A stretch of DNA of 64,000 bases from Entomortierella parvispora E1425 (taxonomy: Eukaryota > Fungi > Mortierellomycota): NCBI GenBank assembly GCA_020891255.1, contig BQFW01000015.1, positions 2,356,001-2,420,000 on the forward strand. The letters are read 5' to 3'. The notes under the pieces are model-generated. The model was given only the letters and a program-made list of their open reading frames with translations. It was not told where the DNA came from and ran no database searches. Position numbers and translations under genes: made by a program. Each line of letters starts with the position of its first letter. Positions within the stretch are counted from its first letter, which is position 1. This document shows, piece after piece, positions 57,687-63,106 of the stretch.

Positions 57687-58411
57687 ATGGTCAAAGCCAC
57701 CTTCGCGTTGCTCGTCGCCTCCATGGCGATGCTCCTTTCCTCTACGGTCGAATCGGCCCCCATTGAGTTGTCTTCCACAGGAAAGACAATTGCATTGATC
57801 TCGGCCAGCGAGTACTGCCTCTTGTTGCCACCCAACAAAGGTGGAAATGTAAACGCACCCTCCCTCCCACATGTCCGAGTGTTTGCCCTTGTCAGGCACA
57901 AATGTATAGGCAAAGAGTCTGACCTCTTCTCTTTCTACCTCCCTTCTTAGATCGCTGACAGTGAAGACTCGGCCATTTCCTTCTGCAATAAGGCCATTTC
58001 AACGGCTCCGAATGCCAAGACCCTTCCCTCTGGATTCATCAAGAGCGCCCATTTTGTTCACAACACCTCCAAGGACTATGTTCAAATCACGGTAGGAGAC
58101 GATTTTTTTCCGATGCTCCCTCCAATACAGCCCATTTTTTTTCGTTTTACTCATTTTCTCTCTTGTTCTATTCTCTACAATAGGGAAAGATTGATCGATC
58201 CAAGTATGACTTGTCCGCCGGCGACGGTGGTGGACAATACGATTTGAATGCCCCCCATGGTTCAGCCTGTGCAGGCTACAGCAGCTTTGTCCAGTTTGTT
58301 GAACCCGATGTTCAGATCTATTGTCTCCGTTGCTGCAAGAACAAATCAGATTGCCCCACCAACAGGTCAACAGACGGTTGCGAGGCTGTCTTGGGAGGTG
58401 ACTACTCGTAG
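57687..58411 (+). CDS. Small secreted Cys-rich protein (copy A); 3 exons (57687-57848, 57951-58091, 58184-58411); about 176 aa
   Basis: Signal peptide MVKATFALLVASMAMLLSSTVESA; CLLLPP...GG.IADSED.AISFC...LPSGFIKSAHF...YVQITG...DGGGQYD...C..Y..FV...EPD...YC.RCC...DCP.NRS..GC..VLGGDYS. Clear paralogue of 62348-63106. Confidence 0.88.
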
Positions 58412-58829
58412 AGGTATCCCAAATTGTTCTCTTTCTTTTTCGCTCCTTTTTTTTCAGGTCGCGAAACGCGCGCGTCCGCTCCATCTCGTCGTCATCTAAA
58501 TATCTTCAGAAATTAAAAAATGAACTCCTCCACATAAACCAGACAGACGTCTTTTGAACAGAAAAAAAAAGGAAGGGAGGGTTGGAGGGTGAGGCCCAAG
58601 GGCCATCCTTGTGTTTATCTCGCTCCATCTACTTTGGCTTTTCATTGTAGTACTTGTTTCTATAGCAGAGCTGTCATGAAAAGCATCTGACAAATCCAAA
58701 TTTCTGATAAATTGATGTGGTATATCCGCGATGTGATTGCACCAGGATGACCTCCTCTCAATTTTTTTGTTTTTTGTCTCTTCGTCTTTTGTTCGCTTTT
58801 CCTCTATTGCTCAGACCCCCTCTTTGACC

Positions 58830-61800
58830 ATGTCCACCACAGAAGTTGTCAGAAACCCTGGCCCTGGCACCAGAGGCCGAAAGGTGCAAATCACTGCCAA
58901 CTTTTTTGAAGTCAAGAACCTCCCCAATATCACAATTCATCATTTTGACGTGACCATCTCGCCCGACGTACCCCCGTCGACAAATCGAAAAGTTTTTTCT
59001 CAATTCATTGACCAGTTCCGTGTTTCTGACCTCCAAGGCGCCAGGCCTGTGTTTGATGGGCGAAAGAATCTCTTCTTTCCCAAGGCACCTCCCTTTGATA
59101 GTAGAACATTTGAGGTGATTACAGAAAGATACCCCTTCCTTTGACCTGGTTGAGCCGAGGGGTTTGGGTTAACAAGTTGCTAGTCTTTTCTTTTCTTGTT
59201 CATTAGATCGTCCTCCATGAAGACGCGAGAGCAAAGGGGACTCTTACGCCATCGTTCAAGATGAAGATCAAAAAGGTCAACGAGATCCACCTCAGTGAGC
59301 TCTCTCAGTTTCTCCAAGGCCAGATCCCCCTCACCAACAATTGCCTGACTGCGATCATGGCTTTGGATGTCCTGATCCATCACGAACCAGCCATGCTCTA
59401 CCAAACTATTGGTCGATCATTCTTCACGCCCCATGGAAGTCGTCCTCTCTCTGGTGGTTTGGATGTCTGGCGTGGATTTCATCAGTCGATTCGTCCAGCT
59501 GTAGGTAGGAACCAGGCACTTTCATGAACAACAAAAAAAAAAAAAAGTTTCAGCCTATTTACTCCCTCACTTGTCCACACGAACAGGGAAAATGATGGTG
59601 AACTTGGATGTCTCGGCAACAGCGTTCTACCAGAAAGGTTCTTTGGTCGAAATGATCGTGAAGGTTCTCGGGCTGCGAACCATTGGTATGTACAACTTTG
59701 CCCCATCGTCAGCAACCAAATACGAAATCCCCTATCCCCTACTGACTCGCTTCTCTCTTAAAACCCACCCAGACGATCTGCGTCGCTTGTCCGTCCCGAG
59801 TTTGAACCGTTTGGAGCGTCACATTAAAGGTCTCCGAATCCAAGGCACCCATAGAGAGCGCTCCTCACGCTCCTTCAGAATCTTAGGATTGACCAAGACC
59901 GCAGCCAACGACACTCTCTTCAGTCGACACGGCCAGGATGGGGCCGCCGCCACAGACATGATCGACGTGGCTTCCTATTTCAAAAAGGCCTACAACATGA
60001 CACTGTCGTTCCCTGCACTACCCTGTGTTATTGTTGGCAAGAGCGCCATGCTGCCGCTGGAGGTCTGCACCGTCGTCGAGGGTCAGCGCTACCCCAAGAA
60101 GCTCGATGGATCCCAAACGTCCGATCTGATCAAATTTGCATGCTTGGATCCAATTACCCGTGCCAACAACATTAAGGATGGTCTCCGTATCCTCAGCTAC
60201 GCCGAAAGCGATTACCTCAAAGACTTTGGCCTCAAGATCTCGAATGAAATGATCTCGATCCAAGCGCGTGTTCTTGACCCCCCAAAGATCAACTACAGAA
60301 CCGCCACCGGAGAGACTGGCTTTCTTCCTGTGAAGGGGGCTTGGAACATGTCAAACAAAAAGTTGCTTCAAGTGGCCACGTTGAAGTCTTGGGGGGTGGT
60401 TGTTTTTGACTCTGAGAGAAACACACCAGCGAGTTAAGTCCAGATGTTCATTCGGGAATTGGGCATCACCTTCGAGGAAATGGGCATGGCCGTCATCAAC
60501 AAGAATCCGCCCATCATATACAGTGGTGTCAACCCCGAGACTATCGAAGGGTCTTTGAAGATCGCCTGGGTCAGAGCCGGGGATGCGGTACAGTTGAGGC
60601 CCCAACTGTTGGTCTGTGTCCTTCCAAACATCGGTGTGCCCTTGTACGCCGAGATCAAACGCGTCGCAGATACGATCCTTGGAGTCTCGACCCAGTGTGT
60701 TCAGGGAAAGCATATACGCACTCCCAAGAAACAGTACTGCTCTAATGTTTGCCTCAAGATGAATGTCAAACTTGGCGGGGTCAACTCTCGACTGGCAGTC
60801 GGATCCCTCCCTTTCCTAGAGGAAAAAGTGACAATCATCTTTGGAGCAGATGTTACTCATCCTGGACCAGGTAACATTGTGCTGTTTTCCTAGTAAAAAG
60901 TCGTGGCAAAGAAGAGAGAACTCATGTTGCTCTTTCACCTTTTTTTTTTTTTGTAGGAGAAATTGATCGTCCTTCAGTCGCATGCCTGACTGCATCCATG
61001 GATAACAAGGCAGGGAGGTTTGCCGCGGCGATCCGTATCCAGCCTGCCCGCCAAGAAACCATTACTGATCTTACTGACATGGCGGTTGAGCTCCTACGGG
61101 CCTTCTATGCATCGTAAGTCCCATTTTATTTCCCTCTTGATCGGTGGTTCCCTCTCCCCCGACGGGTTTGATTCTGTCCCTGAATCAAATTTTTTGCCCC
61201 TTCTGTCTGTTGTAATGTGATGATTTAGAACCAATCTCACGCCGGAGCGGATCCTTTTCTACCGGGACGGTGTGGCCGAGAGTCAATTCGCGCAAGTGCG
61301 TCGAGACGAGGTCGCAGCCTTGAAGGCCGCATTCAAGCGACTCGACAAGGACTACAACCCTCAGCTAACCTTTCTCGTCGTTCAAAAGCGCCATCACGCC
61401 AAATTCTTTGCGATGCGAGCCGGCATGGGCGACGGTAAGGGCAACTGTCAGCCAGGGACAGTAATTGACACTGAAGTTGTCCATCCATTCGAGTTCAACT
61501 TTTACCTACAGAGTCATGCGGGCTTGTTAGGCACTTCGCGATCGGCCCATTACCATGTCTTGCACGACGAAGCTGGGTTCAGTGCGGATGACTTGCAAGA
61601 GCTGACCTACCGCCTCTGTCATTTGTATGCGCGCTGCACGCGAGCTGTTTCCAAGGTGCCATCGGCGTACTATGCTCATTTGGTCGCAGGCCGTGCTCGG
61701 TTCCATTTGAAGGGACAGAACTGGAGCGAGAGTGGTTCTACGGGTGCAAAGACCAGTTCAGGGGAGGAAGGAGTGACAGGAGATTCGACCTCCAGTGACA

Positions 61801-61960
61801 AGAATGGATTTGGTAAAGTCCATGGCAATCTCTCCAAAGGTAAGATGAACGTTGCTGAAGGAACATTTTTTTTAACTGACCTATGCTTTTGAGTATGAAG
61901 ACTAAGGCATCTTTGCTTTTTTTTATGCTTCGATTGCCAATAGTGATGTGGTTCATGTGA
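58830..61960 (+). pseudogene. Argonaute (N-L1-PAZ-L2-MID-PIWI, DEDH tetrad) with one in-frame TAA at codon 449; 7 exons (58830-59114, 59207-59504, 59587-59685, 59773-60870, 60957-61113, 61229-61839, 61944-61960)
   Basis: VFDGRKNL, GRSFF, VWRGFHQSIRP, PAZ YFKKAYN...LPC, GAWN, QCV...KMNVKLGG, GADVTHP, QE, FYRDGV, KRHH, GTSR, LCHLYARC, YYAHL, terminal VMWFM*. Exons total 2565 nt in frame, with TAA at 60435-60437. Confidence 0.85.
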
Positions 61961-62347
61961 GAACCATCCCAATGACAACAGTATCAGTTGTCTCCGTATT
62001 GCATCCGTGGGTGTTCTCTTCCTGCAAAATACCTTCTGCGGGGTGACAACCAACAACTGATTCAAAGAAACAAGAACTAGAAGGATGTCAAGATGTCAAT
62101 CAATAAACCGTTTCGTCAAAAAAAAAAAAAAAGGCTCGATTGCGTGTACTACATTCTCGCGTTTTGTGCCAACACCCTACTCCACTTTCCTCTTTCCAGG
62201 GATTTCAGAGGAGCAGTTCTCGTTAGAAGCTTACTAGCCGACCCCAAGCCCCAGCCCATAGATAGATCATCTCATTTCCCCCTCCACTTCAACCGTACTG
62301 AATGATGTCATGATTTTTTTTCTTTAATGTTCTATGCAATTCATGAT

Positions 62348-63106
62348 TTAGGAGTAGTCGCCGCCGAGGACAGACTTGCATCCATAGGTGGAGCGGTTCA
62401 CGGGGCAGTCGGACTTGTTCTTGCAGCAACGGATGCAGTAGATCTGAGCATCTGGCTCGGTCAATTGGACAAACGAAGCGTAGCCGGCGCAAGTGGCACC
62501 AACGGGGGCGCGCATGTCGTACTGACCACCACCGTCCTTGGGCGAGAGGCCATACTTGGAACGGTCCATACGACCGGTGATCTGGACGTATCCCTTGCTG
62601 GGGTTGGAGACGAAATGAGCAGACTGGATAAAACCAGAGGGCAAGACACGGGCCTTGGTCGCGCCATAGACGTTGTCCTTGGTACAGAAAGCCACCGCAC
62701 GGTCCTCGTTCTCGGCAATGTCACCGCCATAGCCTGGGGGCAAGAAGATGCAGAAGTTGCTGGCATCCCAGATGGCACCGGTCTGACCAGACTTGCCGGG
62801 CTTCACGGAGGGAAGGGGAGAGGCAGAGGTGGTGCGAGTCGTGGTAGTGTGAGCAGCAGTGGTGGTGGGGACTGCAGTCGTAATGGCATGGGTGGTAGTA
62901 GTGGTAGGCTTCTTGGTGGTAGTGGTGGTTGTATGCTTCTTGGTAGTGGTCGTGGTATGCTTCTTGGTGGTGGTGGTATGCTTCTTAGTGGTTGTGTGCT
63001 TCTTGGTGGTGGTCGTGTGCTTCTTCTTCTTGTCGACAGCAGCGCCAGAGACGAGACTGATCAAGACAGCCAACACCAAGGCGATCAGGAAGATGGAGGA
63101 ACGCAT
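62348..63106 (-). CDS. Secreted Cys-rich protein (copy B) with a KKH-Thr repeat stalk; intronless; 252 aa
   Basis: Signal peptide MRSSIFLIALVLAVLISLVSGA; same Cys-rich domain as 57687-58411, ending VLGGDYS; Thr-rich insertion before the domain. Confidence 0.9.
   Translation of the reverse strand: MRSSIFLIALVLAVLISLVSGAAVDKKKKHTTTTKKHTTTKKHTTTTKKHTTTTTKKHTTTTTTKKPTTTTTHAITTAVPTTTAAHTTTTRTTSASPLPSVKPGKSGQTGAIWDASNFCIFLPPGYGGDIAENEDRAVAFCTKDNVYGATKARVLPSGFIQSAHFVSNPSKGYVQITGRMDRSKYGLSPKDGGGQYDMRAPVGATCAGYASFVQLTEPDAQIYCIRCCKNKSDCPVNRSTYGCKSVLGGDYS
62891..63031 (-). repeat. Coding tandem repeat K-K-H-T(3-6)
   Basis: KKHTTTT KKHTTT KKHTTTT KKHTTTTT KKHTTTTTT KKPTTTTT. Confidence 0.92.

Follow-up and report, generated by a model that had tools for sequence, protein, structure and literature searches.

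A premature stop codon inside the MID domain of a divergent Argonaute paralogue of Entomortierella parvispora E1425: probably a young null allele

Argonaute proteins of the AGO clade, among them human AGO2, Arabidopsis AGO10/AGO1 and Neurospora QDE-2, are encoded in one polypeptide reading frame with the domain order N-L1-PAZ-L2-MID-PIWI. They carry the DEDH slicer tetrad and a Y-K-Q-K pocket for the 5'-phosphate of the guide. Short prokaryotic Argonautes consist of MID and PIWI only, occur with APAZ partner proteins and are catalytically dead. Young or unitary pseudogenes are found among multi-copy fungal RNAi genes, where a single disabling substitution strikes a redundant paralogue. Our analysis concerns a window of 64,000 nucleotides of the soil fungus E. 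parvispora E1425 (contig BQFW01000015.1, positions 2,356,001 to 2,420,000; coordinates below are counted from the first letter of this stretch). On its forward strand, at 58830-61960, lies a gene with the domain order, the tetrad and the pocket of the AGO-clade proteins. Its sequence is that of a canonical AGO-clade Argonaute of eukaryotes, from a divergent paralogue lineage within the Mortierellaceae. Unlike its AGO-clade relatives, the frame is broken by a TAA at codon 449, and no full-length protein is encoded. The likeness to short prokaryotic Argonautes, an open reading frame running from near MID through PIWI, is superficial: this frame starts after the first MID strand and has no operon partner, its PIWI domain keeps the DEDH residues that are lost in the short proteins, and the arrangement was created by a single point mutation and lacks conservation. 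The young pseudogenes are the better comparison, as here too an orthologue decays independently and the historical dN/dS is low, with the window gene caught at the stage of one lesion.

The gene model was verified by script, exon by exon (Table 1). Seven exons comprise 855 codons including the terminal TGA, and the six introns, all GT-AG, measure 82-115 nt. Codon 449 is the sole in-frame stop before the terminal TGA and the sole lesion of the gene; the sequence at 60432-60446 reads AGT TAA GTC CAG ATG. Domain and homology searches were performed per exon translation. Pfam recovered ArgoN, ArgoL1, PAZ, ArgoL2, ArgoMid and Piwi in that order, with scores above the gathering cut-offs except for the 32-aa piece of exon 3 (21 bits versus a cut-off of 22). 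Matches to PDB entries had E-values from 1e-7 for the 51-aa piece of exon 5 down to 1e-57. Alignment to human AGO2 and AGO3 revealed a conserved slicer tetrad, consisting of D in GAD, E in RQE, D in RDG and H in YAH, the counterparts of D597, E637, D669 and H807 in human AGO2. The MID pocket is likewise kept, with Y, K, Q and K at the positions of Y529, K533, Q545 and K570 of human AGO2 (PLYAEIKRV..STQCVQ..NVKLGG in the window, PVYAEVKRV..ATQCVQ..NVKLGG in human AGO2). Script and alignments thus agree with the first-pass annotation of this DNA, which had described six introns splicing in frame, intact slicer residues and a TAA at codon 449.

Table 1. Features of the Argonaute gene, with positions in the window
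Feature	Position	Strand	Remarks
Exon 1	58830..59114	+	ATG start; ArgoN E=2e-17; intron opens with GTGATT at 59115
Exon 2	59207..59504	+	End of ArgoN, ArgoL1
Exon 3	59587..59685	+	End of ArgoL1
Exon 4	59773..60870	+	PAZ, L2, MID, start of PIWI; holds the premature stop
Premature TAA, codon 449	60435..60437	+	About 20 residues into MID; reproduced in a contig of run X1
Internal ATG, Met452	60444..60446	+	VQMF also in orthologue L001; C at -3
Catalytic Asp (GAD; human AGO2 D597)	60849..60851	+	From alignment
Exon 5	60957..61113	+	PIWI; glutamate finger RQE at 61055-61057
Exon 6	61229..61839	+	PIWI; Asp of RDG at 61266-61268, His of YAH at 61677-61679
Exon 7	61944..61960	+	..VMWFM, TGA

The stop had been taken to part N-L1-PAZ-L2 from a MID-PIWI half. 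It does follow 448 codons, but the break falls inside MID and not at the border of L2 and MID. The 220-aa piece 5' of the stop matches positions 2-35 of the 83 positions of the ArgoMid profile and aligns with human AGO2 as far as residue 461. The break site corresponds to about residue 465 of human AGO2. By these alignments the stop would therefore lie past the first beta-strand of MID, which holds the conserved motif SWGVVVF. The ATG that had been proposed to reopen a separate MID-PIWI module is present, in frame and 7 nt past the stop. Its methionine, Met452, stands in the same VQMF motif in the orthologue L001, which has His at codon 449. It is thus an ancestral internal residue, older than the stop, and not a new start.

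Contigs from three public sequencing runs (X1, X2 and X3) were placed on positions 58700-62100 of the window. A single contig of X1, 6205 nt long and at a k-mer depth of 74.8, is identical to the window over this range, with 0 differences and 0 gaps, and its depth is in line with that of neighbouring contigs (72.8-75.2). Run X1, with short reads at about 75x, possibly represents the same strain's short-read library and does not count as an independent isolate. The E1425 assembly combined Nanopore reads with PCR-free HiSeq reads, both from DNA of a ciprofloxacin-cured single-colony line; RNA-seq of the same cured line was deposited as well (PMC8759367). A sequencing or assembly error over a true C had to be considered for a Nanopore-based assembly, which was however also polished with Pilon (PMC8759367). 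Since the short-read contig is identical over 3.4 kb, and unbroken over 6.2 kb, an error of assembly or long-read polishing is excluded and the stop is real in the DNA; the base-call error that had been offered as one of the simplest readings is practically out of the question. Introns 2 and 4 contain long A and T homopolymer runs (59534-59548 and 60940-60952), at which the short-read contigs break or branch in every run.

The only close protein match (P0001, 76 % identity) leads to the metagenome contig L001, an orthologue of the window gene. Word searches sized for the 288-aa or the 434-aa exon ORF retrieved no protein closer than 76 %, and exact look-ups of the two ORFs of the window in the gene index gave no match. 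A metagenome scan added only L002, from another sample, with 100 % identity to L001 over 3355 nt. The two contigs (L001 1-3413, L002 1-3355) come from two different JGI metagenome samples. Because the second metagenome presents the identical sequence, the lesions of L001 are not assembly artefacts, and the same uncultured relative from the Mortierellaceae, with a dead Argonaute, is present in both samples. The exon-intron layout of L001 is that of the window gene. A TGA occupies the codon matching 60381-60383, 18 codons upstream of the stop in the window. Relative to the window, L001 has lost 1 nt at 59369 and at 61244 and gained 4 nt at 60991 and 1 nt at 61748, all uncompensated, so that four net frameshifts result. 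Changes of -1 and +1 at 59307 and 59327 form a nearby pair, and at 61774 three nucleotides are missing in frame. L001 is a pseudogene disabled several times over, and it shares no lesion with the window gene. The search for further lesions in relatives, suggested earlier as the sign of a plain pseudogene, was therefore positive, with another stop and several frameshifts in L001/L002. The decay of the orthologue shows that the gene is dispensable in nature too.

The exon-level ORFs of the relatives align without gaps across codon 449. The window reads ..NTPAS[stop]VQMF.. where L001 has ..NAPKS-H-VQMF.. with the codon CAT; in the paralogues the site reads ..VPKA-Q-VNAF.. (P0002), ..FSEQ-Q-AEHF.. 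(P0003) and ..CSGV-V-LQSF.. (P0005). Exactly one residue was found at this position in 52 of the 56 homologues that span the site. The residue is variable (A 15, V 8, S 6, Q 5 and others, K among them). A stop at codon 449 is absent from L001 and from all 56 homologues. The TAA of the window and the CAT of L001 are each one step away from CAA, so a glutamine codon CAA is the probable ancestor. The most parsimonious history would accordingly be a single C-to-T transition, CAA (Gln) to TAA. A recent nonsense allele of this kind, with loss of an RNAi paralogue, was among the readings of the first-pass annotation, and it is the one which the residues of the homologues and the decay of L001 support. 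A RIP-like mutation was considered and rejected: the change from CpA to TpA would fit, but it is a single change and the gene has no near-identical duplicate. No member of this phylum is known to undergo RIP.

The window gene and L001 differ at synonymous sites with dS values of 0.8-1.3. Against this, dN/dS was 0.063 in exon 1, 0.129 in exon 4 before the stop, 0.103 in exon 4 after the stop and 0.069 in exon 6. The differences in exon 4 are distributed over the codon positions 1, 2 and 3 as 57/24/141. Strong purifying selection has acted over almost the whole period since the two lineages parted, equally on both halves of the gene. With dN/dS values of 0.06-0.13, both losses are therefore recent as well as independent. 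In the window gene the lesion is too young to have left a relaxed dN/dS. A further limit on the age is provided by run X2, which carries the same organism label, though it derives from another sample and study, and spans the entire gene, with about 93 % identity. Eleven indels separate X2 from the window, all of them located in the 5' leader, in introns 1-4 and 6, or at the 3' end, together about 694 nt of non-coding DNA. In the 2565 coding nucleotides there are 0 indels, compared with about 40 expected from the non-coding rate if constraint were absent. Among the 16 exon-1 differences listed, with the list reaching position 59443, 12 are synonymous. Since about half of the expected indels would fall on the branch of the window gene, and no second lesion is present there, an unconstrained phase in this lineage has lasted for at most roughly the last 15 % of its branch. 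Intron 5 of X2 has been replaced outright (61122-61214). The DNA divergence of about 7 % suggests that species-level divergence is hidden under one name. A TAA shared with X2 would point to a maintained feature, the Argonaute being made by read-through or as two cooperating halves, and conditional control of one RNAi pathway would then be possible; we regard this as very improbable.

The first-pass annotation had recommended a count of other Argonaute paralogues in the genome. Three further contigs of X1 match conserved Argonaute segments, which indicates, from these sequence matches, at least three other Argonaute loci and at least four in all. A quick maximum-likelihood tree was calculated for the region of exon 4, with X at stops. 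It joined the window gene to L001 (support 100) and placed the pair on a long stem (0.38), next to P0002, in a Mortierellaceae-specific clade of ten rows. This clade is separate from an "argonaute 1"-like clade; hence the Mortierellaceae have at least two Argonaute clades. The closest named homologues are all from this family, the nearest being P0002 with 56-61 % identity. Paralogues from Podila, Dissophora, Mortierella and Linnemannia, annotated as 'eukaryotic translation initiation factor 2C' or 'argonaute 1', belong to the same protein family and to the same clade specific to the Mortierellaceae, and from these the window gene and L001 stand apart as their own long-stemmed subclade. The exons of the paralogues read through, while the window gene and L001, both readable members of their subclade, are disabled. 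A literature search for Argonautes of the Mortierellaceae found nothing specific to them.

Run X3 is probably an RNA-seq library, because it shares the sample of X1, its contig depths are very uneven and RNA-seq was deposited for the same line (PMC8759367). On the window gene X3 presented one contig of 171 nt (59797-59967) at depth 3, contigs being a poor measure of expression level. Contigs of two paralogues reached depths of 62-441 in the same run, on the premise that X3 is indeed RNA. The X3 contigs cross neither the stop nor any intron of the window gene. These depths fit weak expression or nonsense-mediated decay of the message.

With a probability of about 0.78, a redundant and lineage-restricted Argonaute paralogue has here become a young null allele, or pseudogene, by ordinary gene decay. 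The single C-to-T transition from CAA (Gln) to TAA would stop translation at codon 449 in the sequenced strain, and the product would end after N-L1-PAZ-L2 and the first MID strand. As the stop precedes the normal end by 1.2 kb and three introns, the message is expected to undergo nonsense-mediated decay. Silencing would be carried by the other Argonaute paralogues, and the function of this one has probably been lost. The flawless state of the other 854 codons fits a very recent loss; it fits a gene still in use as well. A sub-case of the young null allele concerns its timing: the mutation may have arisen or become fixed in the sequenced laboratory line only, for example in the single-spore bottleneck that served to cure the endobacterium, and be absent from the wild isolate. 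The DNA was obtained from a ciprofloxacin-cured single-colony line (PMC8759367), and the gene has one lesion only. The independent decay of the orthologue shows, however, that the gene can be lost in nature also, and an origin in the laboratory is the less likely timing, with a chance that we would put well below even. Should the sequenced line be the cured laboratory one, the allele could be an artefact of culture, a point relevant before RNAi work is started with that line.

A different group of explanations retains an expressed product. Judged from sequence features, the readings by read-through, split protein, cryptic splicing and editing are improbable even when taken together. The least improbable among them is that the gene is still expressed, either by low-level read-through of the UAA to a full-length Argonaute, or as separate N-PAZ and MID-PIWI halves with the latter starting at Met452, or as the 448-aa N-PAZ product alone, which might act as a small-RNA decoy. 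Everything but codon 449 is intact, the DEDH tetrad and the 5'-phosphate pocket included, an in-frame ATG follows 7 nt behind the stop, and the stop of L001 falls in the same stretch of 20 codons. These features are met by several others which render continued expression improbable. A product initiated at Met452 would be devoid of the first MID strand, and the methionine was there before the stop was. Its ATG has C at position -3, a weak context, and comes after an ORF of 448 codons; reinitiation after long ORFs is very inefficient. The frameshifts of L001 in the N/L1 region and in PIWI leave the orthologue without a working PIWI half. The idea of a split Argonaute with a separately initiated MID-PIWI module is weakened by the break inside MID and by the age of Met452. 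Read-through faces an unfavourable context. Termination is strong at a UAA with G as the next base, CARYYA-type sequences are read-through motifs, and the downstream GUC CAG mismatches a motif of this type. No local RNA structure was detected around the stop (z = -0.31). The stop is also not conserved, as L001 has the sense codon CAT at this position.

A cryptic intron could take the stop out in frame. The candidate at 60372-60443, which had been put forward in the first-pass annotation, has the required GT and AG, and its 72 nt are divisible by three. In all, 104 GT..AG pairs lie in frame around the stop and were scored. At the 5' site the top candidates reached at most 4.3 bits, compared with 4.1-9.1 bits for the six real introns (five of them at least 6.4), and would delete 84-130 conserved codons. 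The GTGGCC at 60372 is not among the 15 best-scoring candidates, L001 has GCC at this position and no GT, and the residues that would be removed (SWGVVVF...) are conserved coding sequence in all homologues. With a low-ranked 5' site whose GT is missing from the orthologue, the proposed intron could not be sustained, and none of the scored pairs makes a plausible in-frame intron; removal of the stop by splicing has a very small chance. Editing of the mRNA from UAA to UGG is the most improbable reading. Stage-specific A-to-I editing of premature stops occurs in some ascomycetes, but to our knowledge it is known only from sexual stages of Sordariomycetes, with no known case in this phylum. Nothing specific speaks for it here; a U stands before the first A. 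Two adjacent edits would be needed, the stop is not located in a hairpin, and the ancestral residue is variable and not Trp.

Annotation should list the locus as a nonsense allele or pseudogene, and the working RNAi genes of the strain should be counted without it. Beyond annotation its importance is slight. A modest evolutionary interest lies in a divergent paralogue that was constrained for a long time (dN/dS about 0.1) and is being lost independently in two related lineages, which suggests that the role of this Argonaute paralogue has recently become dispensable.

In the flanking DNA, the Argonaute gene is situated between the arms of a 221-nt inverted repeat with 71 % complementarity (58190-58410 on the forward strand, 62349-62569 on the reverse strand). 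Each arm is the Cys-rich C-terminal end of one of two paralogous genes, which run towards the Argonaute gene from opposite sides, with the pattern ..GGGQYD..CAGY..IYC.RCCKNKSDCP.NRST.GC..VLGGDYS. The ORF at 62348-63106 on the reverse strand (252 aa) begins with a signal-peptide-like start, continues with six tandem units of 21-27 nt encoding KKHTTTT(T) and closes with the Cys-rich end; from these features its product is likely a secreted, heavily O-glycosylated protein.
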